A stretch of 63,160 nt of DNA, the filler included, from Lenisia limosa (lineage: Eukaryota > Protista > Breviatea): NCBI GenBank assembly GCA_001655205.1. It is 17 parts of 17 records of this genome, joined end to end, with 100 filler letters (N's around TTAATTAATTAA, not from the genome) between each part and the next. Parts side by side here need not be neighbours in the genome. Positions count along the whole stretch, not along the records: positions 50,215 to 58,770 come from LPNZ01001648.1; 16 more parts are not named here. One strand, written 5' to 3'. How positions within the stretch are numbered: position 1 is the first letter of the stretch; each line of letters starts with the position of its first letter. The notes under the pieces were generated by a model that saw only the letters and a list, made by a program, of their open reading frames with translations, was not told the DNA's origin and made no database searches. Shown in pieces: positions 30,913 to 58,870 of the stretch. Both the position numbers and the translations under genes were made by a program.

Positions 30913-31189
30913 TTAAATAGTCGTTTTCTAATTGTGTGTGTTTTCTTTGCGAGATCAACCGCCGGATCTTTATTTCAACAGAGCCTTTTCTGCAAACAAA
31001 AAACGTAGCTTCGCGTACCTAACTTGAGGGCCATCGTTTCTGGTGATTGAGTCATATGGTTCCAAGAGGTTAACGTGGAAGCACTGTGTGTTTGAGTCAT
31101 CTGAACGTAAATCAAAGCATGACTAAGTCAGTAATTCTTATTCAGTTTAATTCTAACAGTTTATCGCGAACACACATATACGTTCCAAT

Positions 31190-31288
31190 TAGAGCTTCAC
31201 TTCCGTTCGAAAAAGACCGGTAAAGTATCGATGGTTTTCGAGGATTTATCGAGAAATTCAGTCTTTTTTCGCACCGAAGTGAAGCCAA
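31190..31288. mobile_element. Family A: ~100-bp hAT-type MITE (reference copy)
   Basis: TIR TAG(G/A)GCTTCACTTCGGTTCGAA...TTCGAACCGAAGTGAAGCCCTA with a perfect 8-bp TSD GTTCCAAT here. TSDs also at 22242-22320 (ATTGAAAC, 8/8), 2430-2516 (7/8), 44222-44317 (7/8) and 47308-47406 (7/8). Roughly 30 full or partial copies, e.g. 2553-2656, 7958-8045, 11180-11278, 15202-15304, 30013-30113, 34854-34953, 36686-36817, 44101-44200, 52572-52671. Confidence 0.92.
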
Positions 31289-32699
31289 GTTCCAATGTCT
31301 CTATTATTTCTTAAATCACCACTATTCATCAAGAGATTATCGAATTTTTTTGATTGATTTTGGACCTGGCAGTTAAGCATTGTATGATGATTCTCCAATT
31401 ATAATTACAACTACAGAGAAGGTCATGTACCGAATAAACCAACATACTCGTTTGTACGGAAAAAATAGCATATGGCCACTCAATATGGGTCAAAATTTGA
31501 AGAATTTCCAAGGCGTGTCCTTCAGCATCCCGCAATATTTCACTAGACGTGTGAGTTAACTAGTTACCCGATGAGACGAAATATAATGAATCTGTCTGAA
31601 ATATCACTTTTATATGGTATTATTCATTACAGACAATTATAATAATCATCTTACTCAAAAGGACGATAAGTAATATCATTTGGAGTACCACTTAGCTAAA
31701 AACAACAAGCACCCATACAAGGCTTGTTATGCAAGCAGGTAACATCAATCCCATAGTAACGAAGAAAATATCAAGCAGATCAATTGCAAAACTACTGTGG
31801 TGCAAATAGAGTAGGTATGTCCTTAGAAGTAACACATCAACACTTTCACCCAGATCTTGGGTTACAATCAATTTTCCTTTCCTTGACAAAATCATTGACC
31901 CACTTACTTCGACGTAATGAAGGTTGTAACTTGATTTTGAAGGTTTAACTCACGAAGAAGAAAGGCTACAAATGAAAAAATACTTTGGGAATCAAGAAGC
32001 AACGTGAAAATTAGAGCTTCAATGTCAGTTCCAGAAGACTCTTAAAATATCAATATTTATAGAAAATATTTTCAGTCTTCTTGGAAACCGAAAGTAAACC
32101 TCAAGGAACATAAAAAATAAAATTTTATAAGTCTGTACCCCNNNNNNNNNNNNNNNNNNNNNNNNNNNNNNNNNNNNNNNNNNNNNNNNNNNNNNNNNNC
32201 TCAAATAAGTTGATGCTTGTAAAAGCTCTTAAATCAAAATAAAATATGCATCAAAGGTCAATGTACTGAAATTATTTTCTCGCCAACGATCAACCCTCTT
32301 CTCAGGTATGAGTATCTCTACCCATGCTTCTGCATAATTGGAGGATAACAGGTGTATTATTAATAAATTATCACGCGTACTGCCCTCAACACTCATTCAG
32401 CAAATTTACGCTGGAAAATGTTACTCTACCACCCCAGGTAAATATTGTATTTTCTGGGTACCCAACCTCTATCCTGGAGGATATAAGAAGAGGGGGTTAT
32501 ATATAAAAGATATATATTATGTAGATATCGATGTATATAATATATATAAATATAAAGGAACCCTTCTGGGATCGAACCCACCCTCTCCAAATGTAATAAA
32601 AGAACAAACATGGGAAAGGGTCGGATACTTCCAAAAACAAGGTGCCCTTCGTGGAATCGAACCCACTTTATCCAACAAACACACCTTGTTTTCTGAAAT

Positions 32700-39400: not shown

Positions 39401-42400
39401 CATACGATTTGTTGACATCAAAACCAGATTGTTTGAAACGTAGATTTACATTGGAAATCTATGGCCTGCGTCAACAATTCCACAAATGAGTGTACAGTTT
39501 TCACCTGCGAGAACACTCTCTCCACCTCAGCCTCTGTGACGGTCTCATGGAAAATGGTCATAGTATAATGCGCAAAGGGGCATCCAAGAGTCTCGCGACC
39601 TTCCCAAAATTTCAAAACCTGGGGTGTATAAATTTTATGATGAAGTTAGAACCCACTTGTTCAACATTCAAGGGATGCATAAATGTCCTGCATTTTGACC
39701 CACTCTCTGTAGAATTATTCGAGATCTAATAGAACCACATTCAAAGCCCTCCAAACAAAGAGGAGATTTCTCTTCGCCTTAATCTTCTTCAGTTTATCAG
39801 AAAGCGTCGGTGCAACAAAGACATGGATCAGCAAGCCTTTGGCAATCAATGTCTTCCTTGTTGTGTCCAGGCATTTGAGAGCTAGCTCATTGTTGATCGT
39901 TAGTACCAGTGGCCGACAGAAAATGGGTGATAAAGATAGCATCTTGTTAGAGAAAATACTAACCCCGATGAAGGATAATAGAAGTGTATATGTGCCACCC
40001 GAAATGAAATAGGTCTGTAACTTTCTTGTTAATACCAGAAAAAACAAAAAAAGTCTTGACGGCCCAAAAGCGATTTCAGCATCATAGTCATCAATGATTT
40101 GCTTCTCCTCAACCGACGCATTTTGCTTTCCAACAATCACATAAGCTCGAAGGCGACTTCCATCCGACCTGTAACGTGAAACAAGACGATATATTTTTTG
40201 TCAAAGATCATTATGAATCAACCACTCACATGCCTCCTCCCATCAATTTAGTGGCTCGATTTTCCCCAAAGATTTGGTAAACCCATCACAATTTCCATAC
40301 TTTAAGACTTTGTCATTAAAAGTTTCGTCAGCATTTACTATTAGCAGAGAATTGACATCATATTTTTAATAGTTTTAAAGAGTTCACTAGAATATTGCTG
40401 CAACTTGGCAGGAAGGTCATCGAACATATAAGTGGATTCAACACATCTTGCGGTCTGTGTTAAAACAGTAAAACATACTCCAAATTTGATGTCCATATCC
40501 CTATTTCTTTCCATGAAGCCATCAAACATCTTTCATTGAAATCAGGTACTTTCAAATGCGGCCTAAAGATTTATTAATGATGCCAGAAAACCTTTTCAAT
40601 GATGTCAGATTTGGTAACATCAGCATAATTGAAAAAATCAGTCAAAATATGAGACACCAAATTCAACCCTTCACCATCACTCAAAATTTGTTGTCCTCCA
40701 CTTTATTTGGGTGAAATTCCAGACTCCAACTATAAGTACTTTGAAATAGTCGCTTGACTTAAACCAAAAAGAAAAGAGAGCTTTTGCTGCGAAAACAATT
40801 CACCATTAGGTCCAACAATTGAACTAAAAGTTGATTTGTCTTATTTTATTGTGTACCTTATTAAGATTTAATATTTATATTTCTTTATCACCTTTCAGAC
40901 CAAAGATGAACTCAAATGCTTGAAAGAAGAAACAGAAAAGGCAGTAGAAGTCAGACGAGAGGAAGAAGAACAGAGGCTGGTGCGCCTGGAGGAGGAAGAA
41001 GAAACTCGCCGCATTGCACAGGAAGAAAAGGAAGCCCTTTTACTTGAAATCAAGTTAGAGGAACAGAGAATCGCGGAAGAGGCACTGGAGGAAGAGAGAA
41101 GGAGGATTGAAGAAGAGGAAAGGCTTGAACGGGAGGAAGAATGGAGGAAGGAGGAAGAGCAAAAAAGATTACAAGAGGAAGCACAGAAAAGGAAAGAGGA
41201 AAAGGAGAGAAAGCAGAAAGAGGAAGAAGAAAGGAAACGCCAAGAAGAAGAAGAGAGAAGAAGAAAAGAAGAGATCGAAAGAGCCAAAGAGGAAGAAGAG
41301 AAAAAAAGAAGACAAGAAGAGATGGAGAGAGAAAGAATAAAACTAGAAGAGAAGGAGAGGAAAGAAAAAGAAAGAAAAGAACGGGAACAAAAGAAGGGGG
41401 AAGAGAAGAAGCGACAAGAAGAAGAGGCATTACGAAGGGAGCAAATTGAGTCAATCAGAGCTGAAGCGGAAGAAAACAAAAAGAAGCAAGAAGAAGAGCT
41501 TGCCCGTCTTCGCGATGAAATGCGTGCAAAAGAGGAGAAGTGGCAGCAGGAACGTGAGTTCGTCACCCAGGAGACCCTTGCAAAATCGAGGGCAATTGAA
41601 GAGGAGAAAGCAAGACTGAGGGAAGAGGAGGAAAGAGCCGTACGGGAGGAGGCTGAAAAAGCTGAGAGGCTCAGAAAGGAGAAGGAACAGGCACAGGAGC
41701 AACTCAGGATGGTTGAAGCGGAGAACGAGAGAATCAAAAGGGCACAGGAAGAGGAGTTAAGGAAGGCACGTGGCGATATGGAGGAAAACCAGCGCCGATC
41801 CAGGGAGGAAAGTGCAGCGCTTGGCAAGCAGTATCAAGAAATGATGATGCAATTGCGTGAGCAGCAAGTGTCACGTGATGCGGCCGAGCAGGATGCTCGT
41901 TTGGAGCTCCAGCGAATGGAAGCTGAACGCCAGCGCCAAGAAACTGCGCGTCGTGACGCCATTCGTCTTGCTGATGAGCGTAAATTGCGTGAAGAGGCGG
42001 AAGCGGAGCAGAGGCGAGCCGAAGAAGCAAAACAGCTTGAAATGGCACTGTTGGCGGAAGAGGAGGCTCGAAGGGAGGAAGAGGCCTTGGTAAAGGAAAG
42101 AGAGCAGGAGGCACGTGACCAGATCTTGCGCCAGCGCGAAATGGATTTGATGCGTCGCGAGCAGGACTTGGCGTTTCAGCGAGATGAACTGGAGGCGGAA
42201 ATCGCCGCCGGTACNNNNNNNNNNNNNNNNNNNNNNNNNNNNNNNNNNNNNNNNNNNNNNNNNNNNNNNNNNNNNNNNNNNNNNNNNNNNNNNNNNNNNN
42301 NNNNNNNNNNNNNNNNNNNNNNNNNNNNNNNNNNNNNNNNNNNNNNNNNNNNNNNNNNNNNNNNNNNNNNNNNNNNNNNNNNNNNNNNNGTTGTTCGCAA

Positions 42401-42549
42401 ATGCATTAATCCAACAGGGTTGCTTTGTTTTGGTTGGTTTATTTGTTTTTTTTATTTATAAAGTTGTCCATCTTTACCCTCTCCCAGATGATGAAATTGA
42501 GGAGCCCCAGATCCAGCCGTTGGCTGTTTCTAGTCCTGTTGCTTCCAGA
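36474..42549 (+). CDS. Large E/K/R/Q-rich coiled-coil protein (trichohyalin-like composition)
   Basis: Exons 36474-36614, 36857-38454, 38547-38628, 40899-~42211 and 42489-42549 join in phase across GT-AG introns. They include the 530-aa and 513-aa ORFs in the track. Probable upstream exons near 35222-35317 and 35780-35858. Confidence 0.88.
39420..40830 (-). pseudogene. Decayed DNA-transposase sequence inside intron 38629-40898 (pogo/Tc5-like 5' part, hAT-like 3' part)
   Basis: HTH-like SQQKLSFLFGLSQATISKYL, WFDGFMERN-like segment, LLIVNADET (40322-40345) and SDGSRLRAYVIVGK. These are followed by GGT...SFIGVSI...LIHVFVA...ALNVVLLD and FW...TEAEVERVFSQVKTVH (39490-39615). Many stops and frameshifts. 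Confidence 0.65.
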
Positions 42550-42794
42550 GGTAATAGGAGGGGGGTATGAACTAAGAGTGGGGTATTGAAACTGGAAATG
42601 AGTGTAACTGGAAGTGAGTGTCGGAACTGGAAGTGAGTGTCGGAACTGGTGACAGCTGAAAAACGAGGNNNNNNNNNNNNNNNNNNNNNNNNNNNNNNNN
42701 NNNNNNNNNNNNTTAATTAATTAANNNNNNNNNNNNNNNNNNNNNNNNNNNNNNNNNNNNNNNNNNNNGGGGGGGGGGGGGTTGGTATTATATC

Positions 42795-42871
42795 CAGTGA
42801 CCGGGATATGTCTTGACCTATTTGCTATGTGATCTCTCAGGAATATTGGTCAAGACTTATCCCGGGCACTG
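42795..42871. mobile_element. Family D: ~75-bp Tc1/mariner-type MITE
   Basis: Palindromic CAGTGACCGGGATA(A/T)GTCTTGACC...GGTCAAGACTTATCCCGG(G/T)CACTG. TA flanks in copies 11883-11957, 15459-15536 and 27537-27601. Other copies at 10524-10561, 27881-27900 and 35083-35158. Confidence 0.85.
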
Positions 42872-43070
42872 TATATGAAAAGTCTAGGAAATCAAGTAAA
42901 TATACATAGGGCTACCATAGGGAATATTATTATACTTCCGCGCCCGCGCTACACGCTCCTTGGCGTACGTCCCCCTCCCTGAAAATACCTTCTCTTTCTT
43001 CTGATCGAAAAAGCCACAATATTTATAAAATCCCCCCCTTTGTTCTTTTCGAAATTTTTAATAGTTGCAG

Positions 43071-44902
43071 GGAAAGCAGAAGCAGCAGAAGCGGACCAAC
43101 ACCTTCTTCGAGTTCTGTAACGCCACCAAGGTACCCGGGGGTATTTGTGCTCCCCGGGAGTATTTGGTGATAAAAGGGGGGGGGGNNNNNNNNNNNNNNN
43201 NNNNNNNNNNNNNNNNNNNNNNNNNNNNNNNNNNNNNNNNNNNNNNNNNNNNNNNNNNNNNNNNNNNNNNNNNNNNNNNNNNNNNNGGGCTTTTTTGTTG
43301 ATTAAATTTTCCAATTTACCCCCCCCCCCAGGGCACGCTGTTCTGCACGGACGTAGCTGCGAGAGGTCTTGATATCCCCGATGTTGATTGGATCATCCAG
43401 TACGACCCTCCTGATGACCCCAGGGTGCGGCGCTTTTTATTCTGATAAGGGGACTAATTTTTTCTCCTTTTCCAAACATCAAACAATCAATTCGCCCTTC
43501 TTTTTCTCCTCTTATCCAGCTTTTCTTCTTTTCCTACCATATTAGTAATTTACCCACCTTTGTCTTGAGTTACCGAATTCACCGCTCTTTACTTGCTGTA
43601 TTAGGAGTGCACCATTTTCTTTACTTACCATATGTTAGGAATACATCCATCGTGTCGGCCGTACCGCTCGTGCCGGCGGCAAGGGTCGCGCCCTTCTTTT
43701 CCTCCTTCCCGAAGAAATGAACTTCCTCAAATATCTCTACAAAGTTGGGGATTTGATTTTTTGAAAATTTTATCGTATCTTTTCATATCATATATACCAT
43801 ATAGGAGTAATATGTAGAGCTCCGTGCAGTTTATTGAACAAATAATTGCAAAATTTGAAGTGCGACACATTGTAATGTCAACTCCATTTGAGACACTTTA
43901 CTTTCAAATTTTGTCAATTTAGTTCTTCAAAAAATTAATTGCACGAAGCCCTAGTAATATGATTATGTGTCATGTTGAAGCAGTTAAAGCTGCGCGCTTT
44001 CTGGAATTCTTATTCTGTAGTACAAGGTCACTCTGAATGAATACGAGTTCGGGAGGGAAAAGCTCATCAACGTCCAAGCCCAGGTGGCGGGGGGTGTAGT
44101 TAGAGCTTCACTTCGGCTCGAAAAAAGACGGAATTTCTCGATAACTCCTCGAAAACTATCGATATTTTACCGGTCTTTTTCGAACCGAATCGAAGCCCTA
44201 TGTATGGTAGTGGGATTGAAGTAGAGCTTCACTTCGGTTCGGAAAATACCGACAATATCGATATTTATGGAAGATTTATCGAGAAAGTCAGTTGTTTTTC
44301 GAACCAAAATGAACTTAGATGGAAGGTTGTCTGAAGTGTTATTAGCCAACAGAGTTGACTTGGGCTTTTTTGTTTCATAAATTTTCCAATTTTACCCCCC
44401 CCCCCCTCAGTTGGAGAAGCTGGTTGACACAACACACTACCTCTACACCTCAGCCAAGGAAGGAATGAGATCGTATCTTCAGGCCTACTCCACCCACCAG
44501 CTGAAGGTCAGGCTTACACCACGATTCATCTTGCGATTCTTATGAAGAAACCTTTTTTTTTATATAATATTATATAATATCCATTCTTCCACCCTTCTTT
44601 CTATTCCCTTCCGACTACCCCCCTCTCACTGGTTCGTAATATTTGATACGTTGTGTTTCCGTCTTTTTTTTTAGCAAATCAAAAACACTATTTCACGAGT
44701 TGATCCCGGTTTACTTGGTTTTCATTTGTTTTTTTTTTGTTTGGAGTTTCAGATTATTCGGTTCGTGATTCTTCATCAATATTTCCTTCGCCCCTTCTAA
44801 ACCCCCTAGGATGTCTTCAACGTACACCTGCTGAGCCACGCCCGCGTAGCCCGAGCTTTCGGCTTCCAGCGCCCTCCAAAGATCCAACTTCGCAACCTCT
44901 AG
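43071..44902 (+). CDS. DDX18: DEAD-box RNA helicase DDX18/HAS1, C-terminal half
   Basis: Exons 43071-43130, 43332-43424, 43639-43743, 44021-44083, 44411-44506 and 44810-44902 give [64 protein letters not shown]...[10 protein letters not shown]...[38 protein letters not shown]...[15 protein letters not shown]. Confidence 0.97.
43815..43953. mobile_element. Family F: ~140-bp hAT-type MITE
   Basis: TAGAGCTCCGTGCA...TGCACGAAGCCCTA with a perfect 8-bp TSD GTAATATG. Second copy at 16601-16738; partial copies near 1800-1835, 53425-53500, 55160-55188 and 55580-55690. Confidence 0.88.
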
Positions 44903-45905
44903 GTCTCTTTCGTCATTTATTTTCATCATGGTTTCTTATGGGCAAGAAATTTTTACTCATGGGGGCTCACAGATAGGGGGAGTCAAGGGTAGCGCAATAT
45001 TTTTGACTTTTGTGGATGAGCAGCCGCACTTTTGTTGGTAAAAGAGTAGAGATAGTCTTCCATTCTTGATTTCCCCTGAGGAATTTCATTGCTGCTAGGA
45101 GTATGTAGAGAGGAGAAATAAAACGGTGGTACCATCTACAAGGGTTCTGAAATTCGCTCCAATTCCACTCCAATTCCAGTCACATTGTTTTTGGTTATAG
45201 GGAGAACATAGTAATAAATTTTGAAGTATCTGATTGTCTGAATAGGGAGTCTGCAAAACAGGGTTATTTTGAAAGGGAAACAAAAAAATAATAATAAAAA
45301 AATCCGTATTTTTCCCTGGGCGCTAAACCAACTATTTCACCGCAAGTCATTCGTTCCTCTCTTTGCGTAATGTGCGGCTCTCGTGCTCAAAAGAGGAATA
45401 TGTCATGTTTTTCCACACCTTTTCGGAAAAACCCATCATATTTTCTCGCCAGCATGAGTCGTGATTCTACTCATCAAGCCGAGGTTTGCAATGTTCTTGG
45501 CTAATCCCTTGAGCAAATTCGCTTAACCTGACTCATTTTGTCAAAACGAGTAAGATTTCATTAAAATTCCCCAAAAAAATTATCTATGTTGTTGTACTAT
45601 GTGTTTTATAATGGTTTTAGGACCTTCATCCCTCAAGATAGTTGCTCATTTTTTATCGTTCTCTGTGGAAACTGTGAAACTAGCGGATTTCTTTTGCACC
45701 CCAGACACTCCGATCCCACTGGTGTCTCATACATTCAAGATTTATCGCAAGCGCCGCCACCAAGGAGCTCAGGGTGCACCCCAGAGACAAGCAGTAATGA
45801 ACTACCTGACTTGAAATCATTAAAAACCGTTATTTTTTAACCATATTGCCAAATTATAATTCACAGAGAATCCCCGATTCCACTAAAGCAACATACATCA
45901 TCACC

Positions 45906-46024
45906 TTAGACAAGCTTCTTAGACCTGAAGAAGCGACGAAGGTAAATGAACTGCCAGGCGCCTGAGGCAAGTACAAAGACCATGGAGATGATACTCAGCA
46001 TCATAACGCGGAAGTTGGTGGATT
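45906..46024 (-). CDS. TMED10: p24/emp24 cargo receptor (TMED10-like), last exon
   Basis: ESTNFRVMMLSIISMVFVLASGAWQFIYLRRFFRSKKLV*, with the family ESTN.RV, TM helix and YLRRFF..KKL motifs. Confidence 0.9.
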
Positions 46025-46426
46025 CTGCGGGGGGAGGGTGAAAAAAAAAACAAGAACATTCGGAAATAAGGAAGCCCACAGTTAACTGTGTTGGCTAACA
46101 ACACAAAAGGGTTGAAAAAATAACAAACAAAATGCCAGTTGCTTNNNNNNNNNNNNNNNNNNNNNNNNNNNNNNNNNNNNNNNNNNNNTTAATTAATTAA
46201 NNNNNNNNNNNNNNNNNNNNNNNNNNNNNNNNNNNNNNNNNNNNATAATATACTTTTATAATTTACAGTGAGATAAGTAATGGTACCACAATAGGGCAAA
46301 TCTGGACTTTGTGCAAAATATCTTTTACACATCTAAACAGGGACTTCCCAACTTGAATATCTTTGCACTTCACCTTGATAATTCTGGATAGCGACGGTTC
46401 AATTTTCTAAAAATTTGACGTTGTAG

Positions 46427-48660
46427 TTCAAAGCTACTCCAATGTCGCTAGTGAAATTCTCCCAAATGGAGTTGTGATGGATGCGTCCTCCTTTGCTGAA
46501 GATCTGACCGTCAAGGTGAGTAACGATTAACTTGCGATAAAGAGGAAAAGTCTGATTCGTCTTTGGATATTGATTTTGCCCAGATGTCGCCCATCCACCC
46601 ACTTGGCCCGAAGGTTACGAGTACTCTTGCGGCGCACTCCACCCACACTGTTGAGGTTGAACCTTGTTCTGTTAGCGCTATTCAAGTGGGAAGCCTATCA
46701 GTTATTCATCTGATTTATTATTATCAAGCCATTCCTTGGTCTTGTTCTTATGTTATACACTGTTTAGGTTTGCAACTTAGCAACTTGTGGCTCACCTGAG
46801 GTGCACACCACTCCCGCCCCTGGTAGGCCTAAGTTATACTGTTTTACTTTTTGAGTGATTGGGCACTTAATATTTATATTTATTGAGTATTAATCACAAC
46901 GGCATACCTCATATAGAGGGTAAAACAAAGGAAATATAGAATACGAGTTTGTGATGGAATTAAGTATAGCATATAAAAATGGCAGTTTGATGGCATTTTG
47001 AAAGCTGTGGATTTGGTGATTGGTATTATGTGTCTGCAATTCCAACTCTCTGGCACCTCTTGAATCTGTGGCACAAGACGGATTTAGGAGGCCCTACCTG
47101 GGTTATGATGTAGGAGATTTTGTCTATTCATGAATCTAATCCTTTTAGGTATGTTGGGGAGGCACGCAGAAAGCTGTGTACACAGAGTTGTTAGGCAAAT
47201 GATTGGAATACTATAATTCAATATCTATATCTCTTATAAATATTTCCTTGTTTTATTTCCCATCTTTACCAATTATTTTTGATATTATGTTATGTAGCTA
47301 TACTACTTAAGGCTTCTCTGTGGTCCAAAAAAACTGGTAGAATATCGATTTTTTTCGAGGATTTATCGAGAAATTCAGTCTTTTTGGGACCGAAGGGAAG
47401 CCCCAAATACTACATATCATATGAGATTCTTTACTGGTAGTATATGATCTACATATGATGTAAGGTAAGAGCTTGTCTCGATGATTGAGCAGCTCTTTTC
47501 TTAACAATTTGCAGGGATGGTTGCATTGGAAACATCACAGTTCAATGACATCACGAAGACAATCCATTTTAATTCATCTTGGACTGCTCAGGTTTGCTAA
47601 AGCTGTTATTGAATTTTTCTTTGCCACGGTGAAATTGCTCCTCATAATTCCAATAACCCGCTTCAGTTTCACTACAAGCCTGGAACTGTTAAATCTGGAG
47701 TCTACCGCCACCTTTTTTCTGTTCAAAAAGTTAATAAAACTCCTAGTATGCTACTTGGTCATCTTCTGTATTATGAATGGCAGTTTTCACTTACATTTCA
47801 GCCACCTATGACTTCTTTATTCGCGATAATGAAGCCTACCCTGTACGGGGGTGTTGATAATTATCAAGATATCACTTTTTTTATCACCATGATGACACTG
47901 ATTGCACACTGCTTTGTTTTGATTCACACCCGTTTAGAACGCTGAACTGTTCATCATGAACAGTTTCAAGTTTGAAGGAATGCAATTCGGTATGTCTTCG
48001 TCCAAAGGCTACTGCCCAATCTTAGCTGTGCGAGTTTGTTAACCATTCAGCTACTGGGGTTTGGAACGATATTATTGTATCCTACAACCACGTGTCTGGA
48101 GAAGTCACTCTATACGTGAATGGAGCCACTGCCTCAGTGGTGGCTACCGAAGATATCTTCTCTGAGGGTGACTATGTGAGTGACCTTTTGGTATACCGCA
48201 TGACCCCCCTAGATGTTCAATATTGGAGGACATTTCAGTTCTTCAACGTACCAAGGGTTGAGTCATTCAATGGGTGCTGGCCACGCCTTTAACTTTGTGG
48301 GGGGGGGGGTTGTTTGACAGTTTTTGTTTCGCAAAATTGACAACCAACAGTTCCGAGTGTTTGATGGGGCCACCACGGACTTTGCAGCTCTGGTCGCCGC
48401 ACCACACCACCACCCGTTGACCAAGGTCGGTTTGCTTCTCCACCATTCCTTCATTCACCCCTTCGAGTTAAACAGTTATCTTGTAAAACTGTTGCAATGT
48501 TGCCGTTATTTCTAATTTGGTGCACAAAGTTACCTCTTACACCCCTTCCCCAGGTTCCAGCAGGTTCAGGAGTAAATGCCTTGAATTATGAGTTTTTCAT
48601 GAACCATCTTTCAGTAGCATCCTTTGGCAACTACTTCAGGCTAGGGTACAGCTATGATGA
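46427..48660 (+). CDS. Multi-exon protein with a LamG/concanavalin A-like domain
   Basis: Exons include TGVWNDIIVSYNHVSGEVTLYVNGATASVVATEDIFSEGDY, MFNIGGHFSSSTYQGLSHSMGAGHAFNF and FRVFDGATTDF (LamG-like W.H..Y..G..LYVNG / IGG / FRV.D pattern). Further exons probably continue to ~49975. Confidence 0.65.
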
Positions 48661-50214
48661 GTGTAATGTTTAGTTTCTCTGTAGTTGTCTTGAATGATAT
48701 CATATTATATATTATTTTTTCGTCATAGTTTCAAACGACCTTCATTCACATCAAAACACAGTATTAGTTCTCAAGCAAATCTTCAACCTGAGGGATAAAT
48801 GGGAATGGAAATTTTACCAGTTTACAATCGAATAGGGTGGACATACCTTCTCCTCTTTCATTGGTGTGTATTTGGTCCGGCCGCGACCCTTGACTTCTTC
48901 ACCATGTTTTCTTGAGCGTAAAGCATGATAATGTTAGCTCTGTTGCATGCAATACAAAAGTTTACAGCAAGTACGACCCCCCCCCCCCCCNNNNNNNNNN
49001 NNNNNNNNNNNNNNNNNNNNNNNNNNNNNNNNNNNNNNNNNNNNNNNNNNNNNNNNNNNNNNNNNNNNNNNNNNNNNNNNNNNGCTCATTCCTATCCCTG
49101 CTGTTGTCTCTTCTGTCACGACGGACTGACTTGTTACAATTGCCAAAATATGACAGAAGATGATTTGTTAAAAAAGCCAACAGATGACAGATCAAGAAGG
49201 GTGACGTAACTCACCCTCTCTACGCCCTTGGCCCCTGTTATCTCTTTGGAAGCCTCCTTTATGGGGTGCTGACATTGTTAAGAGAATCTATCAACAACAC
49301 AAACATGATGCCAACCTCTCTCGTGACTTGTTCTGTTGTAAGAGTCGCGATTACGATTGACTTCGAGGACTGCAAAATGACAACAGTAGCACTGTATTTG
49401 TATAGTCTTATATAATATCTTTATTGATGGTAATTTGCCATTTTTGTTTCAGTACGTCATCCCCCACCCCCCCACATTTGTTGTAATAAGAGAACTTCTT
49501 TTTTGTTGATCCGGTACCAAGAGTGAGCTTCACATCGCCCATTGTAGCTTGACGCATCTGAATGGTCAGCGTGGTCATTAATATATCAAAATCACCCCCT
49601 TTCTGACCAATAGTTGAGAAAGAGACTTCTCATTGTCAACAAGTGGTTTTGAAATGTACCAAACACCCTCGATCACTAAAAAGGAACGTGAGGAACAAGT
49701 TGTTCACGAACGGAAGTTCAAGTTTAATTTATATCATATACTCTAAATAAATAATACTACCGAGATAAATTTTAGTTTGTAATACACTCATCCTGCTTTT
49801 ATATTTTTATCATATTATTACTCGCTATCAACTCAATACCACGCACTTGAAGCTTCTTCGGGCTTCCTCGCACTAAACAGTAAAAAGGTAATATTTATAT
49901 TTCAGGCAATACTTACCGGAAGAAGGACATCTACGACAACCTTACCTTGACTTGCCACGGTAAACTGGCTCTGTAGGGGCAACAGGAATCGTTAGTTTCA
50001 TGGCTAGTACAGGGTTAGAATTGCTCTTATTTCAAAACGCTCTTTCTTTACATAATATAGTATAATACAAATGTACATAGCTAAAAACATGTATTATATA
50101 TATATATATATCTANNNNNNNNNNNNNNNNNNNNNNNNNNNNNNNNNNNNNNNNNNNNTTAATTAATTAANNNNNNNNNNNNNNNNNNNNNNNNNNNNNN
50201 NNNNNNNNNNNNNN

Positions 50215-50412
50215 CATCACCATCATCATCATCCACTATCATCCACTATCATTATCATCATCATCATTACCACCATCATCATCATTATACACATCATCAT
50301 CATCATCATCATCATCATCCACTATCATTATCATCATCATCATTACCATCATCATCATCATCATCACCATCACCATCGTCATCTACTATCATTATCTTAT
50401 TCGTCATCATTA
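50215..50412. repeat. (CAT)n-type microsatellite
   Basis: About 200 bp of imperfect CAT/CAC/TAT triplets at a contig start. Confidence 0.95.
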
Positions 50413-51289
50413 TGACACCATTAGATACGGGAGCATCAACTTCGATCTGAATTTGCCAAGTTTGCCATACCCGCCTACCCCCAATCGTGAGTGAAAATTT
50501 GGTCGTTTTCCACTTTTTTTTTCTTCCGGTTTTTCTTTTAAAAAGCCTTATTTTTTTTCAAAAAATTGTCTTGCTTTTTCGATAAACAGATATTCTCCTG
50601 GACATTTCCAGACCATCCTCAAATTGTAACACCCCAGGCAAGACCCCATGTCGTTTACCAGCCATGCGGTACCCCCAAAACCCCTCAAGTTTGTGGTGAC
50701 GTTAAATTTTGGATTTTTTTATTATTGTTATGATATTTTTTTATGGTTTCTCTTCATTATTATAACATTACTATTGCAACTGCAGACATTTGTTAAAATA
50801 CTACCCTGTTTTTAGACAACCATAATAAAATGTCTTGTGAAAATAGGCATCTTAGTTGGCTCATAAAAATAAGCATCTATTTGCCTCATAAATATATGCA
50901 TTAAAGCTTCTGAATTTCTCGATAAATCATCCGAAGTGAAGCCATAATAGGCATCCAATGGAGTCATCTGGTTTTGACCCCCTAGTTTTTTAGTTTTTTT
51001 TCAGTTTTTTTTTTTCAATTTTACTCCGCCAGTGTATCAGACCTGAAAGTGGCCCCGCCGGTATTCAAAACCTCGCACCCGGCTCCACTCCGCTCTGTTT
51101 TTAGGCGGTAACCGTCACCCCTCCCTCCCCTCTTCTATCCCAAAAAACCCGTTACTCTAGGTAAGCTATGATGGGATGCGGTGTCGCAGTCGACTGGTCT
51201 GGGCTTTGTTTGTTTTCTTGTTATTGTCCAATTTTAATCCTCAGGTTAAAATCCACATATCGTCAAACGATGGCGGTGAACTACTGAAG
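50412..51289 (+). CDS. Unassigned small exons
   Basis: Several GT/GC-AG bounded blocks (e.g. 50662-50700, 51033-51107 and the exon starting 51245). The reading frame is not uniquely resolved. Confidence 0.3.
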
Positions 51290-51771
51290 GTATTTGTACA
51301 TTAGTATTAGTTGTAGTAGTTGTGTTTTTTTTTTGTTTTGTAGGTTAATGTGAATGTTCGCTTTGTTATTGAAATTGTACTATTACAAGGAGGGGATAGG
51401 TCAAATCTCAAATTAGTTTATTTTCATCAATATCTCTTATACGCGACTCTTGAAAAAAGTCCTAGTGATTCATGGGTCTTTGGGTCTTTGGGTAAGTTTT
51501 GACCTATCTTTTGAAGGAAAATCACTGTATGATAAAGGGAAAGGGTAGAGACGTAGTATTTGACACCTGTGATGTTCAGATCTACCATTTATCAAATCAA
51601 GAATCATCAAACCCATCAACAAGATTCAGAGTGGTAACAATAAAACCGGAAATACAGAACACAACTCCGATCAATGCTAGGATAGGGCTGAGAGAATGCT
51701 GGAGCGGTTAGTCAGAGATTACATCAGGACGCATAATATCTAGGAAACTATATTACAAAGAACGATTACAA

Positions 51772-51917
51772 CACTGCGGCGCATGGACTTGGGATTCCCT
51801 AATGTTATTTGTGAATCCCGTGGATTTCTTCGGATTTCTGTAAAATTCCATGGGATTCCCATGTAAAACTTGGGAATTCCAACGTGTTCAAGAATCCTAA
51901 GTCAATGCGCAGTAGTG
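51772..51917. mobile_element. Small foldback element with CACT(A/G) termini (CACTA/EnSpm-like MITE)
   Basis: CACTGCGGCGCATGGACTTGGGATTC...GAATCCTAAGTCAATGCGCAGTAGTG. A related copy starts CACTACTGTGCAATGACTTGGG at 52263. The TSD is not clean. Confidence 0.6.
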
Positions 51918-52087
51918 CAGTACGAACTTGTCTTACCAACATGAACTTGCTTTACCATTTTTTCAAATCAATTATTCCTAACAACAGTTCAAAATAGAAA
52001 CCTTTTACACAGAGATATTTTATGTTTTTGTAACTTTGGAAAAAATATTTAAAAATTTGAAAAAAAATACCCACAAACTTTTTTCCC

Positions 52088-55000
52088 CGATTCCTTCTTG
52101 GTAATAACATAGTACATCAATCCTAGACAATAAAAAAGGACATAATCAAAAGAATTACAAAACAATACAACCTACCTGGAAAAATATACACAATAAAAGT
52201 ACCAAAGAGAGAACCATTGTAGGCAATAACGTTTTCAATTTCTAAAACAATAAAAAATACGACACTACTGTGCAATGACTTGGGATTTCTGTGAAAAAGT
52301 TGGAATTCCCATCTTTTTCATGGGAATTCTATGAAATTGTATGTAAATCTGAAGAAATGTTTGGGAATATCAAATATTACAAGTCGATGTGCCTGTGGAG
52401 AGGAGGGGGTCAAAAACAAATCACCAAAACAACCCAGCCCACTCTTGTTAGCAAAGGCAATTGAGACGAGAGTGAATATTCCGAGGAAAGTTGTAAAGAA
52501 GTTTCTCGTTTTACTACACGCTTTTCCACCAAAAAACAGCGCTTCAAACTAAAAAATGAATCCAACAAAAGTATGGATTCACTTCAGCTCGAAAAATGAC
52601 TGAATTTCTTGATAAATCCTCGAAAACTATCGATATTTTACCAGTATTTTCCAAACCGAAGTGAAGCCTTAATGAGTCTGGGTATAACGCAATTCACATG
52701 GAAAAACATAAATAGGCAAGAAAAGATTGACCAATCTTCCCTCTTTCATTTGAGCGAATAGCATGGAAAACGAGGGGGAAAGTGAAGAGAATAGCTGCAG
52801 ACAAGCCAACGCGGGAGAAAAGAGCAAGATCATCATCACTACACGATTATGAAAGTTGACACAAAAAGAAAGGGGGAAACAAAATCACAGTAAGTTCCAA
52901 ATGTCAAGCATACTTGCTGAAATTGTTGAAAATATCACCCTCAGTTTCAGAACCGAACAAAAGGTATCCAGTAATTGCCTGCAGGATAAGTATTTGTAAC
53001 ACTTTGATATTATTTTAAAACAATACAATCTTAAATGCGGTAATATGTTTATATTTGAATATCAGGTAAAGAAAGTACGTGAGCAACATAATATATCACA
53101 TACTACATATATTTTGGGAAATTCCTCTTTTGAATTACTTACATACTTTCATTAGCAGCTTTCATTAAAAATACACACAATGAAAAACTGAAAAATATGA
53201 GACTCGGTTATTATTGCGTTATGAATCTGGTTTGACACCTGTTTGACAAATAAGCTTTAATCGTCTGATTTCCTTCTGTGTTGGAGTTAACTCCTTTGAC
53301 ACCCCCCTCATACAATGATAATATATAGACTGGTACAAATAATTGAAGAGAAGTAAATGACCTTGGCCATTTGTGAAGTACTACGCTTCTGAAAAAAAGT
53401 AAGCAACCTGTCCATAAAAGTATAGCTCTGTGCAGTTAATTATTTAAAGAAATTAAATTTCAAATTTAATGTGTCTGAAATGGCGTTTCCATGACAATAG
53501 GTCTCACTTCAAATTTGGTAATTGTTTTTCAATATTACACGAGGCCCTGATATAAAAACAAAAAAACAAAATTCAACATACCTTCAAGGTTTGGTAAAGG
53601 GCTGGCACATTGTAATGACATGTAAATGCCACAGACATCAGAGGAATGGCCATAAATACGTTCCAATTTCCACTGAAAACGTAGTTTACATCCTATAGTT
53701 ATCAGAATCGTGAAACTGAACCTCATGTTTCAGGAGGTGAAGAATGTCTTCAATCTTTGTAAATGGTTGGGGAGTATTCTGGATACAATTTTTCAAAAGA
53801 TAAAAACAATAGTTTCAACAAACTTAAATCACACGAAAAGTTAGAAAACAATGAAGGGAACCTGAAATGTCCTAGCTGTGTCTCGAGCTTTGTACTCTGT
53901 CTCTCCGCAACATACTGTTATATTTTAAGTATGGCTTCATTTAGGTTCAAAAAATACCAGTAAAATATCGAGGATCGATGATTTATCGGAAAATTATGTC
54001 GTTTTTCGAAAAAAATAAGTAAAGCCCTAATTTGAATGTAATAACTCAAAGAAGTGAAGGAAGCAGATACTCCCTATGATGTTTCCTTGAAGACAAAAAT
54101 TCCTTCCCGCTTCCACTACCCACCTCTCCAATGCCATTCTCATTAAAGCGGAAGCCAACAACAAAGACTGAGAAGAGAACAAAAATCAGGGAGAAGAATG
54201 ACGTGAACCTGAGACGATTCATGTCTGCAATAATAACAAAAAAATAAGGATTTTATTAATATTATAGCAACGAGAAATACAAAATAAGATTGTCTCTGGC
54301 AAAGCCGTCCCACCAACGCTTATAAGAGATTGTGAATGATAGTATAATATTCAAGCCGGAGTCCACTTAAACCAAAATTATACAATTATTGTTCTGGGGT
54401 GAACAAATGTATAATTTTGAGTTTCATCGTTTCCGTGAGATTATTAGCTGAATTCCTTAATAGCGCACAGCAATATCTCTGTTTTACACCATTTTGTGAA
54501 ATTATCTAAATTAATGAAATTTAGCACTTTCTATAGCGGATTTTAGACTTAGAAAATAGTATTATTTTCCAATTCTCTTGGAGTTGACTCAGAAAAGTGC
54601 ATATTTCTTGCAATGTTTCGCGAAAAATCGGGCAAAATTCCAAACAACAGTAGACTCCGGCTTTAATTCACCAAGTCATTTGACTTACAACTCTGTGCAC
54701 ACAACTTTCTGTGTGCCTCCCCAGCATATACAATATACTATGTAATATTGTATCCAACAAATGATATTCCTCCTCATCATCCTCTCATAATACTATATAT
54801 AGAGAGGAGAAGTATAACAAGGTTGTATCTGGTCGAAGCCGTCCACACCATCACCCTGTAGAGTATAATATTAATCCATTTGCCATACAACTCTGTATTT
54901 AGAACCTTCTACATGCATCCAAAGCATACCTCTCATAATACAAAGAGGCATGAGAATGAAAAGGGCGCTAGCATACAACATGAAGCCGCGGTTAGCAAGG

Positions 55001-56336
55001 ATGGTACCGGGAGCAAATTGGTCAAAAATCATAGGGAAAAAGTCACCTACAGTATAACAGTAAATGTTGGGATGAGAAATAGCAGTTTCGTTTGTGAATG
55101 AATTGACAAAATCAGAAATTGAAGTGTCAGAAATGGTGTTCTTGTTACAATATATCCGTTAATTTCTTAATTAATTGCATGGAGCTCTCACCAAGAAGGA
55201 CACTGAAAGCAATGCAAACACCGGATGTGTAGACCATAACCATGAATTGGACAAACGTGGCAATTTTAGGTCCCCATGCGGCTCTGGCAAGTCCGAGGTA
55301 CGAAAACGTCCCGGTACGTTCACCTGAAAACGCAGTAAAGACAGTGTGTACTCTGATATAAGTTTGTACTTGCTATTGTAATATAAGATTGTACTCTGAC
55401 GTAATTTTTATCCAAATACAAAAAAGGGTGACAATAAGCGAGGCAAAAACGACCCTTCCTTACACATTTCGACAATTGCTTTCATAGAGAAAAGCGAAAC
55501 AATGCAAACAAATAAAAGAAGCTAAGAGGTTAGAACCTATAAGAAATTCGAGTTAAGCTGAAATATATGGCTTGCTTGACTCTGTGCAATTAATTGATTT
55601 AAGAAATTAATTGAAAAATAATTCAGTGTCTGAAAAAGGGTTCTGGTTACGTTTAACTTTACAATTCAAAATAGAAAATCAATTACATGAATTTCTATTT
55701 TGCTTACTCCAAGTCCAACTGAAAGCCCACTGCCTCTGAGAGCAAAAGGGAGAGTCAAAATCCCACTAGATAGCATCAGTTACAGAAAAACATCTAAATG
55801 AAGCAGAAGAAAGTAACTAAACCTGAAGTACAAACATCAAAATTATAAGAGCATTGTAAAGCATAATGACCAATACTATCACATATTTTCAACCTAGTAA
55901 GATTTATTTCAACCTATTAGATAGATTCTGCTGTCCTAACATACAAAAAAAGGTAAGCACCACACATATAGCTTTGGTACCAAAAGAGTATAAATCTTCG
56001 ATCAATATCGATATGCTGCGGATCTTTTGGACAAAAGTGAAGCTCTACTACCCTTTAACAAGTTGATATTTTATCGGTCTTTTTCGAACCGAAGTGAAGC
56101 TTAATAATACCCTCAACTCATAAATGACCAAATACCCAAAAGAGTCTTCTGAAAATATTTTTAACATATTGAAATGATGCATCAACTCTTGATAAAAAAT
56201 GGTTTCACCATCACAACCAAAGAGCATAACCCCTCTCAGCCTACACGCCTATGATAGTATTCGATAAATTGAATGTGGCAGACGCAACTGTAGCATTGGA
56301 AGGTTCGTCAACAGGTTCCTCGGGGGGGATCATGTC
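52088..56336 (-). CDS. Amino-acid transporter, Aa_trans/SLC38 family
   Basis: Exons in order encode ATFNLSNTIIGVGILTLPFALRGSG, FSYLGLARAAWGPK, GDFFPM...LMPLCIMRDMNRLRFTSFFSL, AIPLMSVAFTCHYNVPALYQTLK, AITGYLLFGSETEGDIFNNF, LFSRVGLSAAILFTFPLVFHAIR and VIAYNGSLFGTFIVYIFP. Confidence 0.93.
54354..54662. mobile_element. Family E copy 2, nested in a family B element
   Basis: TTCA|AGCCGGAGTCCAC...GTAGACTCCGGCT|TTAA. It splits a B copy at its internal TATTAATTC site. Confidence 0.8.
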
Positions 56337-57595
56337 CTGAGGAGAGTTTAGAAGTTAAGGTCATTTGAACTTAAGGTTCAGTCTTTTGTTTTATTTTGGA
56401 AAAAAAGTGGTAAGAATAAAGGACTGAACTACCTTANNNNNNNNNNNNNNNNNNNNNNNNNNNNNNNNNNNNNNNNNNNNNNNNNNNNNNNNNNNNNNNN
56501 NNNNNNNNNNNNNNNNNNNNNNNNNNNNNNNNNNNNNNNNNNNNNNNNNNNNNNNNNNNNNNNNNNNNNNNNNNNNNNNNNNNNNNNNNTCTCCAGTTCT
56601 TCCTCCTGTGGCTCCCAAAAAGCAGCAAGAAATATGCAATTCTACAGGAAACACCCCTGAAGAGGTTAGTGAATGTCTGTTGAACGAAATATAATAATAA
56701 CATAAAAATCCGTCCCAATGTCTCCTTGTGCAAGTATTGCCTTTCACAACAGCCACTTATTATTTTATTAATTTAGGCTTCCAATTAATTGCAAATTTTG
56801 AAGTGAGACCTATTGTCATGGGAACTCCGTTTCAACTCCCCCTCTTACAATTAAAATTTATTCATGGCACAGAAGGCATCCAGAGCAGTAGTACACATTT
56901 TATTTCAGGCGGGTCACACGATCACAAGGAGGTTCACATCGGTCGGTCACATGGTTACAGGACCATTCAAGTTAAGTGTTTCCTCAAAACTACCCGATCT
57001 ATTGACGTGTGTGTATTTTCGTGGTCACAATCGTTTGTGGTGAATACTTGGTGAAAGACTCCTGTTAATGTTTCTGTCAATTTCCTAATGCATTATTCTG
57101 TTTTTGGGTTGACCGGGATCTTTACGATCTAGTTTTAAGCAATAATAATAATAAAACAAACAAGGGAACGAAAGCGTTAAAGATATTAAGGAACAGTTGA
57201 GTATTAGCAGTTGGAGATTTTATACATACAGAGCCAGTCTTGATTAGATCAGGCACCTTACAAGAAGAAAAAGCCAGTTTTTTGCGGCCCCGATGGCCCA
57301 ACAGTGAGTTTAATGCTTGAAAATACCATAATTAACATAAACAGGCACAGAATCCACGCGTCACCTGTCGCGCAGCACCGAAAGAAGGAAGAACTTTGGT
57401 TCGCGAGGTCAACTCTTCTGTCTTTCTCTTCGGAAACATGCTAATATCTTAGGGGAATCATTGAAAACGCCATTCACACGATCCATGCTCAAAAAATTTC
57501 GACTCTCTCTTTTGAGGAAATCTATAGATGCGGTTTTGACTTGGTATCCCAGAAGGTTTGCTTGTGATAATAGCGGTTTATGATAGTGTTCTTTT

Positions 57596-58728
57596 ATATG
57601 GATTGGAACAAGGGTGCGGGAGAGGTTGTTGCTCTTTTCCTCAGAGTTCTGTCACATGTATATTGGGATAAAATCAGTGCAAGAAACATTGGGTTTTGAT
57701 GAGCTGAGCTATACCTTTGTGGAGGTGGGGGGTGGGGTGTTCTGTGAGGTTTTTAGAATGTTGTAAAGTACTTGGTGCTAGGGTTGCTCTTGGAGTGGCC
57801 GAAATGCGGTCCTGATATGACAGCGTGTACTAAGTTGGTACATTGCAGGGGGTTGGAAATGTTGTCACTCAAAAAGTTTTACGACTTTGTGTCAAGGAAA
57901 AGGATGCATAAAGAGGTTTTGTCTTCTTTGTTAGTTAAACTTTTTTTATTGTATAATTCATATGTTCCCCCTTTAGCTTCATTTATACCCATTTTCTTGA
58001 AGCAAAGTCGTCAAACTTTTTTGGTCCAAACATTTCCAACCCTCAAAGTTTCCCTATCTTGTGACAATATTGGAGTTAATCAAGAAATTCTTCCTAATAG
58101 ATATTCCTTTTGTTTTTTTAGCCTTTTTAAAAGACCGCATACCAGAATCCCCCTTCTTGATAGTCTGAAAATAGTAGAACTGTATATAGCATCCATGTTT
58201 CATATCTCTATCCTCTTGAAAACTCCCTTTTTTCCTCATTTATTCATTTATAACATCATTTTGTTTTCACCTCTTTACAGCACTCCGATTATCTGAGGGA
58301 TAATTTGAACCGTGTCACCCATCGACGCTGTGAAGACATCGCGAAAAAGGTGGGATTGTGTTTTGACAATACAGGGAGAAAAGATCGGTTTATATATCAA
58401 AGATAATTATCGATCTTTGACCCTACCCCCTTATTTTGAGTTCTTTTTTTATTTCAGAAATTTCCAATTTTACTTGTACGCTCGAGTGATGAGATGCGGT
58501 GCTGTAGAAGCGACTGGCCTTTGTTTTGTTGTTATTAACCCTCGTGTGTTGTCAGCCAACAGAGCTGATTTGGGCTTTTTGTTTAACAAATTTTCAAATC
58601 TGACCCCCACCCCCACGCAGTTTTCAGAGACGACCGATACTGGCCCGGCCTTTTTGAGCTTTGTGCACCAGCAATGGAGCCAGTACCATATCGCGTCTTC
58701 GCTCACACGTGATATGATGCTTTATATG
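57596..58728 (+). CDS. Cullin-like protein, N-terminal fragment
   Basis: Exons 58281-58349 and 58621-58728 give HSDYLRDNLNRVTHRRCEDIAKKFSETTDTGPAFLSFVHQQWSQYHIASSLTRDMMLYM, matching cullin FL......W..Y......RDI.MYM. Upstream exons are less certain. Confidence 0.6.
58476..58620 (+). repeat. Family C: ~140-bp intron-shaped repeat that forms 3' splice sites (complete reference copy)
   Basis: GTACGCTCGAGTGATGAGATGCGGTGCTGTAGAAGCGACTGG...GTTGTCAGCCAACAGAGCTGATTTGGGCTTTTTGTTT...CTGACCCCCACCCCCACGCAG|exon. Other copies or parts: 1437-1600(-), 14405-14532, 14648-14779, 16900-16976, 17548-17677, 17870-17910(-), 23719-23878(-), 25520-25643(-), 26600-26715(-), 27312-27405, 29205-29329, 43287-43331, 44335-44410, 46025-46144(-), 51161-51244, 61027-61065, 61347-61380. 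Antisense exception at 1022-1068. Confidence 0.9.
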
Positions 58729-58870
58729 GTAGGTAGCTCTGTGTGTTGTTGCTTTATATGGAAGGTAGCTNNNNNNNNNNNNNNNNNNNNNNNNNNNNNN
58801 NNNNNNNNNNNNNNTTAATTAATTAANNNNNNNNNNNNNNNNNNNNNNNNNNNNNNNNNNNNNNNNNNNN

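Follow-up and report, generated by a model that had tools for sequence, protein, structure and literature searches.

Does a repeat of about 140 bases, here termed family C, supply the 3' splice sites of introns in unrelated genes, and is such a repeat a mobile intron module or an element whose insertion is directed to 3' splice sites? This question is raised by a copy of the repeat that lies at the end of an intron in Lenisia limosa, a tiny-intron eukaryote. The window (the whole stretch of DNA that was analysed, 63,160 nt in 17 joined parts) includes positions 50215-58770, which come from record LPNZ01001648.1. This part, called the piece below, is covered by the in-sequence checks. Two public runs contain the piece: X1, which is DNA-like and comprises 71 Mb of contigs, and X2, which represents polyA RNA.

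Comparison of the flagged copy at 58476-58620 (plus strand) with the family model revealed a full-length unit matching model positions 2-140 (nhmmer; E 4e-40). The unit reads GTACGCTCGAGTGATGAGATGCGG ... AAATTTTCAAATCTGAC-CCCCACCCCC-ACGCAG and consists of a head (GTACGCTCGAGTGATGAGATGCGG), a core, a tail (AAATTTTCAAATCTGAC), a C tract at 58605-58614 and the acceptor AG at 58619-58620. It forms the 3' 145 nt of a 271-nt intron at 58350-58620 (plus strand, GT..AG, phase 0). A 2100-nt polyA-RNA contig of X2 joins 58349 to 58621, and the terminal AG of the unit is the acceptor of this intron, as the RNA contig restarts at 58621. The GTACGCT at 58476 had been termed donor-like in a preliminary description of this DNA. 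It is not the donor of this intron, since the RNA puts the donor at 58350 (GTGGGA) and the GTACGCT of the unit is internal to the intron. The exons delimited by the RNA contig on the plus strand, 58279-58349 on the 5' side (ending at a codon boundary, phase 0) and 58621-58729 downstream of the family-supplied acceptor (translation FSETTDTGPAFLSF...), match the Pfam Cullin profile at positions 3-34 and 69-97.

The cullin intron contains more than one unit. An older, 5'-truncated tail at 58440-58475 (plus strand; TTTTTTTATTTCAGAAATTTCCAATTTTAC plus TT), with an exact CCAATTTTAC at 58464-58473, runs straight into the full unit's head, creating a tail-to-head junction. An X1 contig (...TTTTTTTCAC followed by 58476) displays the same join in the window's own genome. 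A still older tail end with a C tract may lie at 58419-58435 (plus strand; TTTGACCCTACCCCC), where a weak likeness to 58599-58614 was noted by eye and carries no statistics. The other introns of the cullin gene, which are 41 nt (57304-57344) and 54 nt (57399-57452) long, contain no family C sequence. The tail is therefore no splice signal common to the organism's introns.

A second gene in the piece carries a short copy that constitutes one complete intron of 84 nt (51161-51244, plus strand; GTAAGCT...CCAATTTTAATCCTCAG). In this copy, the head (GTAAGCTATGATGGGATGCGGTG..CGACTGG) is fused to the tail (TGTCCAATTTTAATCCTCAG) and the core is deleted. Alignment with the flagged copy covered 59 nt at 86% identity (E 1e-12), and both copies have the start GTA(C/A)GCT and a C/T-rich end plus AG in common. 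A 308-nt X2 contig (record 9) runs through 50449-50486, 50638-50688, 51033-51158 and 51243-51297 without a gap, and its join 51158|51243 is equivalent to 51160|51245 after a 2-nt AG ambiguity is taken into account. RNA joins thus bear out two statements of the preliminary description, namely, that the family's 3' end supplies the used acceptor in unrelated genes (58349|58621 and 51160|51245) and that the full unit reads GT...TTTTAC-Cn-AG, 51161-51244 being an entire intron by RNA.

Two further introns of the second gene end in tail-like sequence. The intron at 50689-51032, verified by the RNA join 50688|51033, ends in ...TCAATTTTACTCCGCCAG; its tail-like 3' end (50995-51032, plus strand) comprises a T run, TCAATTTTAC (1 mismatch), CTCCGCC and AG. 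The tail match at 51015-51024 alone is not significant (a 10-mer with at most 1 mismatch has three occurrences in the piece versus 1.3 expected) and is meaningful only through the family context. The intron at 50487-50637 (RNA join 50486|50638) has a degenerate tail-like end at 50619-50637 (plus strand; TCAAATTGTAACACCCCAG), recognised by eye only. The RNA verifies 7 introns in the piece, all of them GT-AG; 4 to 5 of these have tail-like ends. A minus-strand gene at 52.4-56.4 kb, which gave a weak Aa_trans match in Pfam, carries no family C copy. Other high-copy small repeats were seen in the same introns, with X1 depth peaks at 52420-52819, 54620-55019 and 56020-56219.

Analysis of the X1 contigs revealed 3001 that match 58488-58633 at 90% identity or more. 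The summed X1 word depth in 58488-58560 was about 294,000, compared to 38 in unique flanks (about 7,700-fold). These values indicate that family C copies number in the thousands, the depth not being an exact copy number. The tail consensus derived from X1 contigs extending beyond 58580 was TTTTTCATAAATTTTCCAATTTTACCCCCC, identical to the one given in the preliminary description.

A set of copies for comparison was obtained by searching the translated element (positions 58474-58620 of the window) against protein representatives. The protein library yielded 196 matches, which represent open reading frames passing through copies. Twelve matches were looked up, and all were located in ENA assembly ERZ3820729, giving loci L014 to L025 (129.5 kb in total; the related contigs). 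An iterated nhmmer search with the family C model over 138 kb (the piece plus the related contigs) returned 89 matches, i.e., 87 copies beyond the two in the piece. The related contigs have a GC content of 42% versus 36% in the piece, and the two have family C and a second repeat (with CGAACCGAAGTGAAGC ends) in common. Judged by these features, the related contigs may derive from the piece's organism or a close relative, and a different strain or species is possible. Other searches gave no further comparison material: a metagenome scan with a 21-mer of the tail returned only 13 chance matches in unrelated bacterial- or phage-like contigs (L001 to L013), and a search of other assemblies for the orthologous cullin locus retrieved only other family C copies. 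Words of the family C consensus were absent from the supplements of PMC9860276 and from the searchable literature, and a search with the assembly accession likewise gave no relevant match.

The full consensus of the family reads GTACGCTGGAGTGATGGGATGCGGTGCTGCAGAAGCGACTGGCCTGGG-TTTGTTTTGTTGTTATCAACCCTCGTGTGTTGTCAGCCAACAGAGTTGATTTGGGC-TTTTTTGTTTCATAAATTTTCCAATTTTAC-C(n) (nhmmer), where the GTACG before model position 1 was added from junction read-outs. The 3' end (TTTTAC plus C run) is kept in 76 of the 89 matches, 75 of the 89 ending in the last bin of model positions, and the 5' end (GTACGCTGG) is kept in 34. Start positions in the model are spread over 1-110 while the ends are constant, which corresponds to a constant 3' end with 5' truncation. 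Full-length heads start exactly at GTACGCTGG. Conservation extends to the head and core, which are devoid of splice signals (80-90% over about 100 nt). With respect to splicing, TTTTAC fits the yUnAy branch consensus, and the pyrimidine tract is provided by the C run. For 77 tails, the median distance from the alignment end to the next AG is 8 nt, and this AG comes within 20 nt in 67 cases. In these 77 tails, the stretch between tail and AG is 80% pyrimidine, and a G directly follows the AG in 40% of cases, compared to 25% in controls. The 60 nt after the AG have a GC content of 51%, compared to 42.7% after random AGs. The short distance between tail and AG, the pyrimidines, the GC-richer, exon-like sequence and the G after the AG together represent the signature of real acceptors.

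The orientation of the copies was compared with that of their host genes. In the piece, all family C copies are sense to RNA-defined genes. The called "genes" of the ENA contigs were rejected as strand evidence: every read-through stop in these calls was TGA, which was apparently read as a sense codon (e.g., table 4), and the calls are not real proteins. The donor-motif marker GT(N)G>=8 was therefore taken for strand instead. Relative to the seed copy, 82 of the 89 matches have the same orientation and 7 have the opposite one; these counts, like the density of copies, are biased because the related contigs had been chosen via open reading frames with sense copies. In the same biased sample, copy orientation agrees with the independent strand marker in 36 of 40 cases, the significance of which is overstated as copies inside one gene are not independent. 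Locus L014 contains two genes in opposite orientation with sense copies in each. Exons in the related contigs match kinesin and integrin-type EGF repeats (Pfam), and one exon was read by eye as valyl-tRNA synthetase, for which Pfam gave no confirmation. The cullin, kinesin, integrin-type EGF and ValRS-like hosts indicate that family C sits in unrelated genes. The 3001 X1 contigs, the sense copies in the piece and the agreement with the marker confirm that the family is real, high-copy and sense-oriented, as the preliminary description had stated.

Inspection of the junctions between units revealed stacking. Of the 34 full-length heads, 8 directly follow CCAATTTTAC plus 0 to 3 pyrimidines in a strict test (1.2% expected), and about half do so by eye; the flagged copy is one of these tail-preceded heads (58464-58475). 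Units that are 5' truncated also start right behind the TTTTAC or C run of the previous unit, as at L016 3038, L016 4380 and L015 14642. Three units are stacked at L019 3527-3880 and about five at L025 9322-9658 (four detected by nhmmer and the first by eye). In the latter stack, the first head (GTAAGCTGGA, L025 9322) lies behind a CAG resembling an exon end and, by sequence, is likely the donor of the stacked intron. Together with the one RNA-verified case (51161-51244), this candidate brings whole-intron copies to a small minority. Among 13 pairs of adjacent units, the one on the acceptor side scores higher against the consensus in 11 (bits per nt; p 0.02). Units 1 and 2 of the L019 stack have a common internal deletion and a TTTATAAA variant, and the common deletion indicates that local DNA duplication contributes to the arrays. 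A head-head duplication was found at L024 9984.

Features of known mobile elements were then sought in the unit. No inverted repeat joins the unit's ends, and the longest common flank word averages 4.01 nt, compared to 3.97 nt in shuffled pairs. The earlier statement that the unit has no terminal inverted repeats (TIRs) or target site duplications (TSDs) thus agrees with the present results at the unit's ends and flanks; a TSD inside the C run would escape notice. The predicted folds were no better than those of shuffled sequences (minimum free energy of -28.3 kcal/mol versus a mean of -32.4, z +1.14, and -12.8 versus -15.9, z +1.26). Neither a tRNA-like part (ARAGORN) nor an Rfam match was detected in the element. 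The sense strand of family C carries runs of four or more T's, which would stop RNA polymerase III. Among the long open frames of the 138-kb sample, inspected by eye over their first 90 residues, no reverse-transcriptase partner or transposon protein was recognised.

Two other origins were considered for the unit and rejected. A repeat derived from a box C/D snoRNA would have a C box (RUGAUGA) near the 5' end, a D box (CUGA) near the 3' end and a terminal stem. The head of the unit contains GTGATGA; CTGA occurs only in the 58476 copy, the consensus there being TTTTAC, and neither an Rfam match nor a terminal stem was found. Lariat read-through as the main route predicts a branch A directly before the GT. 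The junctions have TTTTAC, TTTTACC, TTTTACT, TTTTACTT or CAT before GTACGC. This route is also countered by some of the downstream units, which are themselves truncated, a state that a rolling circle cannot yield.

Family C is abundant and sense-oriented in introns, its end is the acceptor that is used, and one copy is a complete intron. Our preferred explanation, to which we assign a probability of roughly 55%, is that family C is an introner-like mobile element without autonomy of its own. It would mainly be added to the 3' ends of introns, probably by 3'-primed RNA copying, and would occasionally make up a whole intron. According to this explanation, the unit would span the 5' splice-site sequence (GTACGCTGGAG...) to the branch-site-like CCAATTTTAC and the C run, and the unit end plus a nearby AG would serve as branch site, pyrimidine tract and acceptor. 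New units would mostly be added in sense orientation, often 5' truncated, at the TTTTAC/C-tract end of introns with an older copy and not into exons. As units would be added next to the acceptor, introns would grow by accretion, and the functions of branch site and pyrimidine tract would pass to the newest unit. In rare cases, an exon would receive a full unit and a new intron would thereby be founded; the copy at 51161-51244 and probably that at L025 9322 look like such cases. The preliminary description had left the choice between a mobile intron module and an element targeting 3' splice sites. The targeting reading fits better than the notion that each copy is a new intron: most full-length heads lie directly behind older tails, many units are 5' truncated and 3' complete, and stacking takes place at the acceptor end.

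An RNA intermediate would fit the unvarying 3' end, the variation at the 5' end, the start at GT even where this GT is unused, and the lack of TIRs and TSDs. This RNA could be an intron, either excised or still unspliced, from which a reverse transcriptase primed at the C/G tract makes a copy, the primer possibly being a bottom-strand G run on the C run of the intron RNA. Several observations stand against the preferred explanation. Only one whole-intron copy is verified by RNA. Classical target-primed insertion usually leaves a TSD, and none was found for family C. The reverse-transcriptase partner is lacking in the 138 kb inspected, a sample far too small for exclusion. Furthermore, the better-conserved 3' ends and acceptor-side units need not reflect age or truncation and could instead result from selection that maintains splice signals.

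Such selection also figures in the account of family C as a classical introner, in which each copy would be a full exon insertion creating its own intron. The 3'-biased fragments would then be remnants left by deletion and decay in a tiny-intron genome, with the branch site and the pyrimidine tract kept by selection, and the mobilising mechanism could be DNA-based. Deletion pressure is plausible because normal introns measure 41-54 nt, and the account accommodates the whole intron with an internal deletion at 51161-51244, the apparent family donor at L025 9322 and the tail-like ends of most of the introns verified by RNA (4 to 5 of 7). However, the left breakpoints recur at the TTTTAC or C run of the previous unit rather than at random, full heads that are unused as donors sit behind older tails, and the acceptor-side unit is usually the youngest. 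We consider this account unlikely. Improbable as well is an ordinary SINE- or MITE-like repeat that lands anywhere, loses its antisense and exonic copies by purging and has its C-rich end co-opted as an acceptor. The unit begins exactly at GT, has no TIRs, no TSDs and no tRNA-like part, and contains T runs at which RNA polymerase III would terminate. In addition, the position of 67 of 77 tails within 20 nt of an AG that is followed by exon-like sequence is far too regular for random landing. The other high-copy small repeats in the same introns (X1 depth peaks) and the low number of antisense copies (7 of 89) are what this account would lead one to expect.

The local duplications described above, i.e., the common internal deletion and TTTATAAA variant of L019 units 1 and 2 and the head-head duplication at L024 9984, are in line with arrays that form through processes acting on DNA (tandem duplication, unequal exchange or gene conversion) and have their seed in the T/C-rich tail, most units arising without transposition. 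Homologous exchange cannot, however, make the first tail-to-head or tail-to-mid-unit junctions. Copies also occur in thousands of unlinked introns, and the unit starts vary (model positions 5, 30, 49, 54, 76, 83 and 101) while the ends are constant, which makes DNA-level arrays a quite improbable main source of the units. Finally, the tails might not be homologous at all and might represent an unusually long, species-specific 3' splice signal under selection, given that TTTTAC fits yUnAy and the C run corresponds to a pyrimidine tract. This is highly improbable: the head and core are 80-90% conserved over about 100 nt without carrying a splice signal, and the 41-nt and 54-nt introns of the cullin gene have no tail.

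Introners have been defined as groups of introns with similarity reaching near both splice boundaries; they create introns de novo by insertion into exons, are enriched in genes and are co-oriented with their host (Gozashti et al. 2022, PMC9860276). Signatures of DNA transposition, in the form of TSDs and/or TIRs, are present in most introner families; ascomycete families without these signatures have been interpreted as RNA-based, and introners are rare in animals (PMC9860276). In family C, similarity to both splice boundaries is found in 51161-51244 and probably in the first unit at L025 9322, and it mostly concerns the 3' boundary only. Like the introners of Micromonas, Aureococcus and dinoflagellates (PMC9860276, PMC12130899), family C is multi-copy, lies sense in genes, carries splice signals, has unit ends at splice sites and includes a whole-intron copy. 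Those introners are whole introns, mostly with TSDs or TIRs, whereas family C units have neither, are mostly 5' truncated and pile up towards the acceptor, each behind an earlier copy. The fungal introner-like elements of ascomycetes, as portrayed in PMC3609843 and PMC9860276, resemble family C in having no TSDs or TIRs, a strong gene bias and a proposed RNA-based spread. The elements described in PMC3609843 are whole introns with stable predicted folds; family C differs from them in that its fold is no better than that of shuffled sequences and its units accrete at the C tract. From a DNA-transposon-type introner or a MITE, both TIRs and TSDs would be expected, and family C has neither.

Site-specific non-LTR retroposons and SINEs that use target-primed reverse transcription (R2 or Tx1 type) combine a constant 3' end, variable 5' truncation, one insertion context and nesting in earlier copies. 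Family C resembles them in its constant 3' end, 5' truncation, recurrent context and nesting. It differs in that it has no TSD, no polymerase III promoter and no partner found in the 138-kb sample, in that its tail is a C run rather than A-rich or a simple repeat, and in that it starts at a 5' splice site. In primate Alu-derived 3' splice sites, a homopolymer-plus-AG end likewise serves as pyrimidine tract and acceptor; these sites are antisense and mostly belong to alternative exons. The homopolymer-AG end is used in the same manner in family C, while family C is sense and supplies constitutive acceptors of conserved exons. The larvacean Fritillaria borealis reportedly has MITE-derived introns (ascribed to Henriet et al. 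in 2019) that are non-canonical and bounded by inverted repeats. That case is similar in that a repeat family shapes many introns of a small-genome eukaryote, but the 7 RNA-verified introns of the piece are all GT-AG, and family C has no inverted repeats. Family C works like an introner, yet it has no TIRs or TSDs of the DNA type, no promoter or TSD of a SINE and no stable fold of the fungal type.

The origin of new spliceosomal introns, and any RNA-based spread of them, is an old open question. Family C also illustrates how a single repeat may end up providing many of a genome's introns, a large share of the total, with their 3' splice signals, and its features (high abundance, no TIRs or TSDs, the GT start, the end with branch motif and C tract, and the apparent accretion at the acceptor end) make a 3'-primed RNA-copy mechanism directly testable. 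Tentatively, and with some doubt, family C might even be a spliceosomal intron that propagates as RNA. It would be reverse transcribed from a genomic C/G-tract primer and re-inserted just upstream of acceptors and occasionally into exons, so that introns would be founded and then lengthened by 3'-anchored, 5'-truncated copies of themselves. If true, this would be the first anatomy-level evidence of RNA-mediated intron transposition outside fungi, possibly, judging from the integrin-type EGF exons of one related contig, in a holozoan or animal.

The related contigs contain 154 runs of 8 or more G's or C's, with a length mode of 12. Of these runs, 46 consist of GT(N) plus a G run and were read as putative intron 5' ends from their sequence context. 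The C runs precede acceptors. The sequence after the donor-type G runs is not family C, and antisense tails were rejected as a source of these donors, as the 12 nt after the G runs are unlike the reverse-complemented tail. No GT-G-run donor is present in the piece. The G/C-run ends may belong to a second module, may arise as a side effect of the chemistry of insertion or may be peculiar to that assembly. Many introns of the related contigs would read GT-G12 ... C12-AG, and the two ends of such introns could pair.

Tiny introns are the default for this organism. Two RNA-verified introns of the cullin gene, the plus-strand host of a copy of family C (the sense-oriented intronic repeat of about 140 bp at intron acceptors), measure just 41 nt (window 57304-57344) and 54 nt (57399-57452). 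Introns bearing a repeat of any kind are 84 to 723 nt long. Within the cullin intron at 57556-58278 lies a 54-nt inverted repeat (57850-57903 and 57989-58042), the arms of which are 81% complementary and 85 nt apart. This element is a putative MITE-like insert of the hairpin type.

Analysis of the related ENA contigs (L014 to L025; assembly ERZ3820729) revealed many putative introns, read from the sequence, with a 5' end of the form GT(N) followed by 10 to 15 G and a 3' end of 10 to 15 C followed by (N)AG. Examples are found in L015 (4166-4180, 4886-4901, and 5729-5742), L021 (3423-3964), and L019 (3356-3883). These 129 kb contain 154 G or C runs of at least 8 nt, the most common length being 12. 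The G-run and C-run ends of the putative introns are complementary and could pair within the pre-mRNA. The sequence downstream of the donor-type G runs in these contigs did not correspond to family C, and no GT(N)-plus-G-run donors were present in the analyzed piece of the window (50215-58770). A full family C unit at L016 2005-2195 is flanked on the left by ATTGACAC and a C-rich run and on the right by a C-rich run and ATTGACAC. This pair was the sole 8-nt flank repeat detected and could be either a coincidence or one of the few target duplications that can be seen.

A second small repeat, with ...CGAACCGAAGTGAAGC ends arranged as inverted pairs, is very abundant and looks MITE-like from its sequence. 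It is common to the window piece (52566-52677, 53930-53971, 56065-56100, and 50910-50945) and the ENA contigs (L015 6240-6375 and L017 300-735). Its depth of contig words in X1, a DNA-like public run, was 42,000 to 53,000 at 52420-52819 and 14,700 at 56020-56219. A third high-copy repeat (54620-55019; X1 depth of 26,000 to 32,000) contains an internal 52-nt direct repeat (54677-54728 and 54877-54928) and is located within the minus-strand transporter-like gene. An 85-nt inverted repeat (51806-51890 and 52292-52376; 76% complementary, with 401 nt between the arms) contains short sub-repeats of the TGGGATTCCC type. Its microRNA-precursor-like Rfam scores were weak, far under the threshold.

The first two exons of the amino-acid-transporter-like gene (55700-56340, minus strand) read ...SATFNLSNTIIG / SGILTLPFALRGSGL... 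and had no RNA coverage. Joining them in frame via a canonical GT-AG intron is impossible; a non-canonical intron or a micro-exon may account for this, or the gene may be damaged. The edge of the piece (50215-50400) is occupied by an imperfect array of CAT/CAC trinucleotides, whose plus-strand translation is rich in His and whose minus-strand translation is rich in Asp/Met.

In the genes called on L014 to L025, the read-through stops were exclusively TGA (2 to 8 per ORF), which suggests that the gene caller took TGA as a sense codon (e.g., table 4) on eukaryotic DNA. Public protein collections contain these "proteins," many of which are translated repeats.
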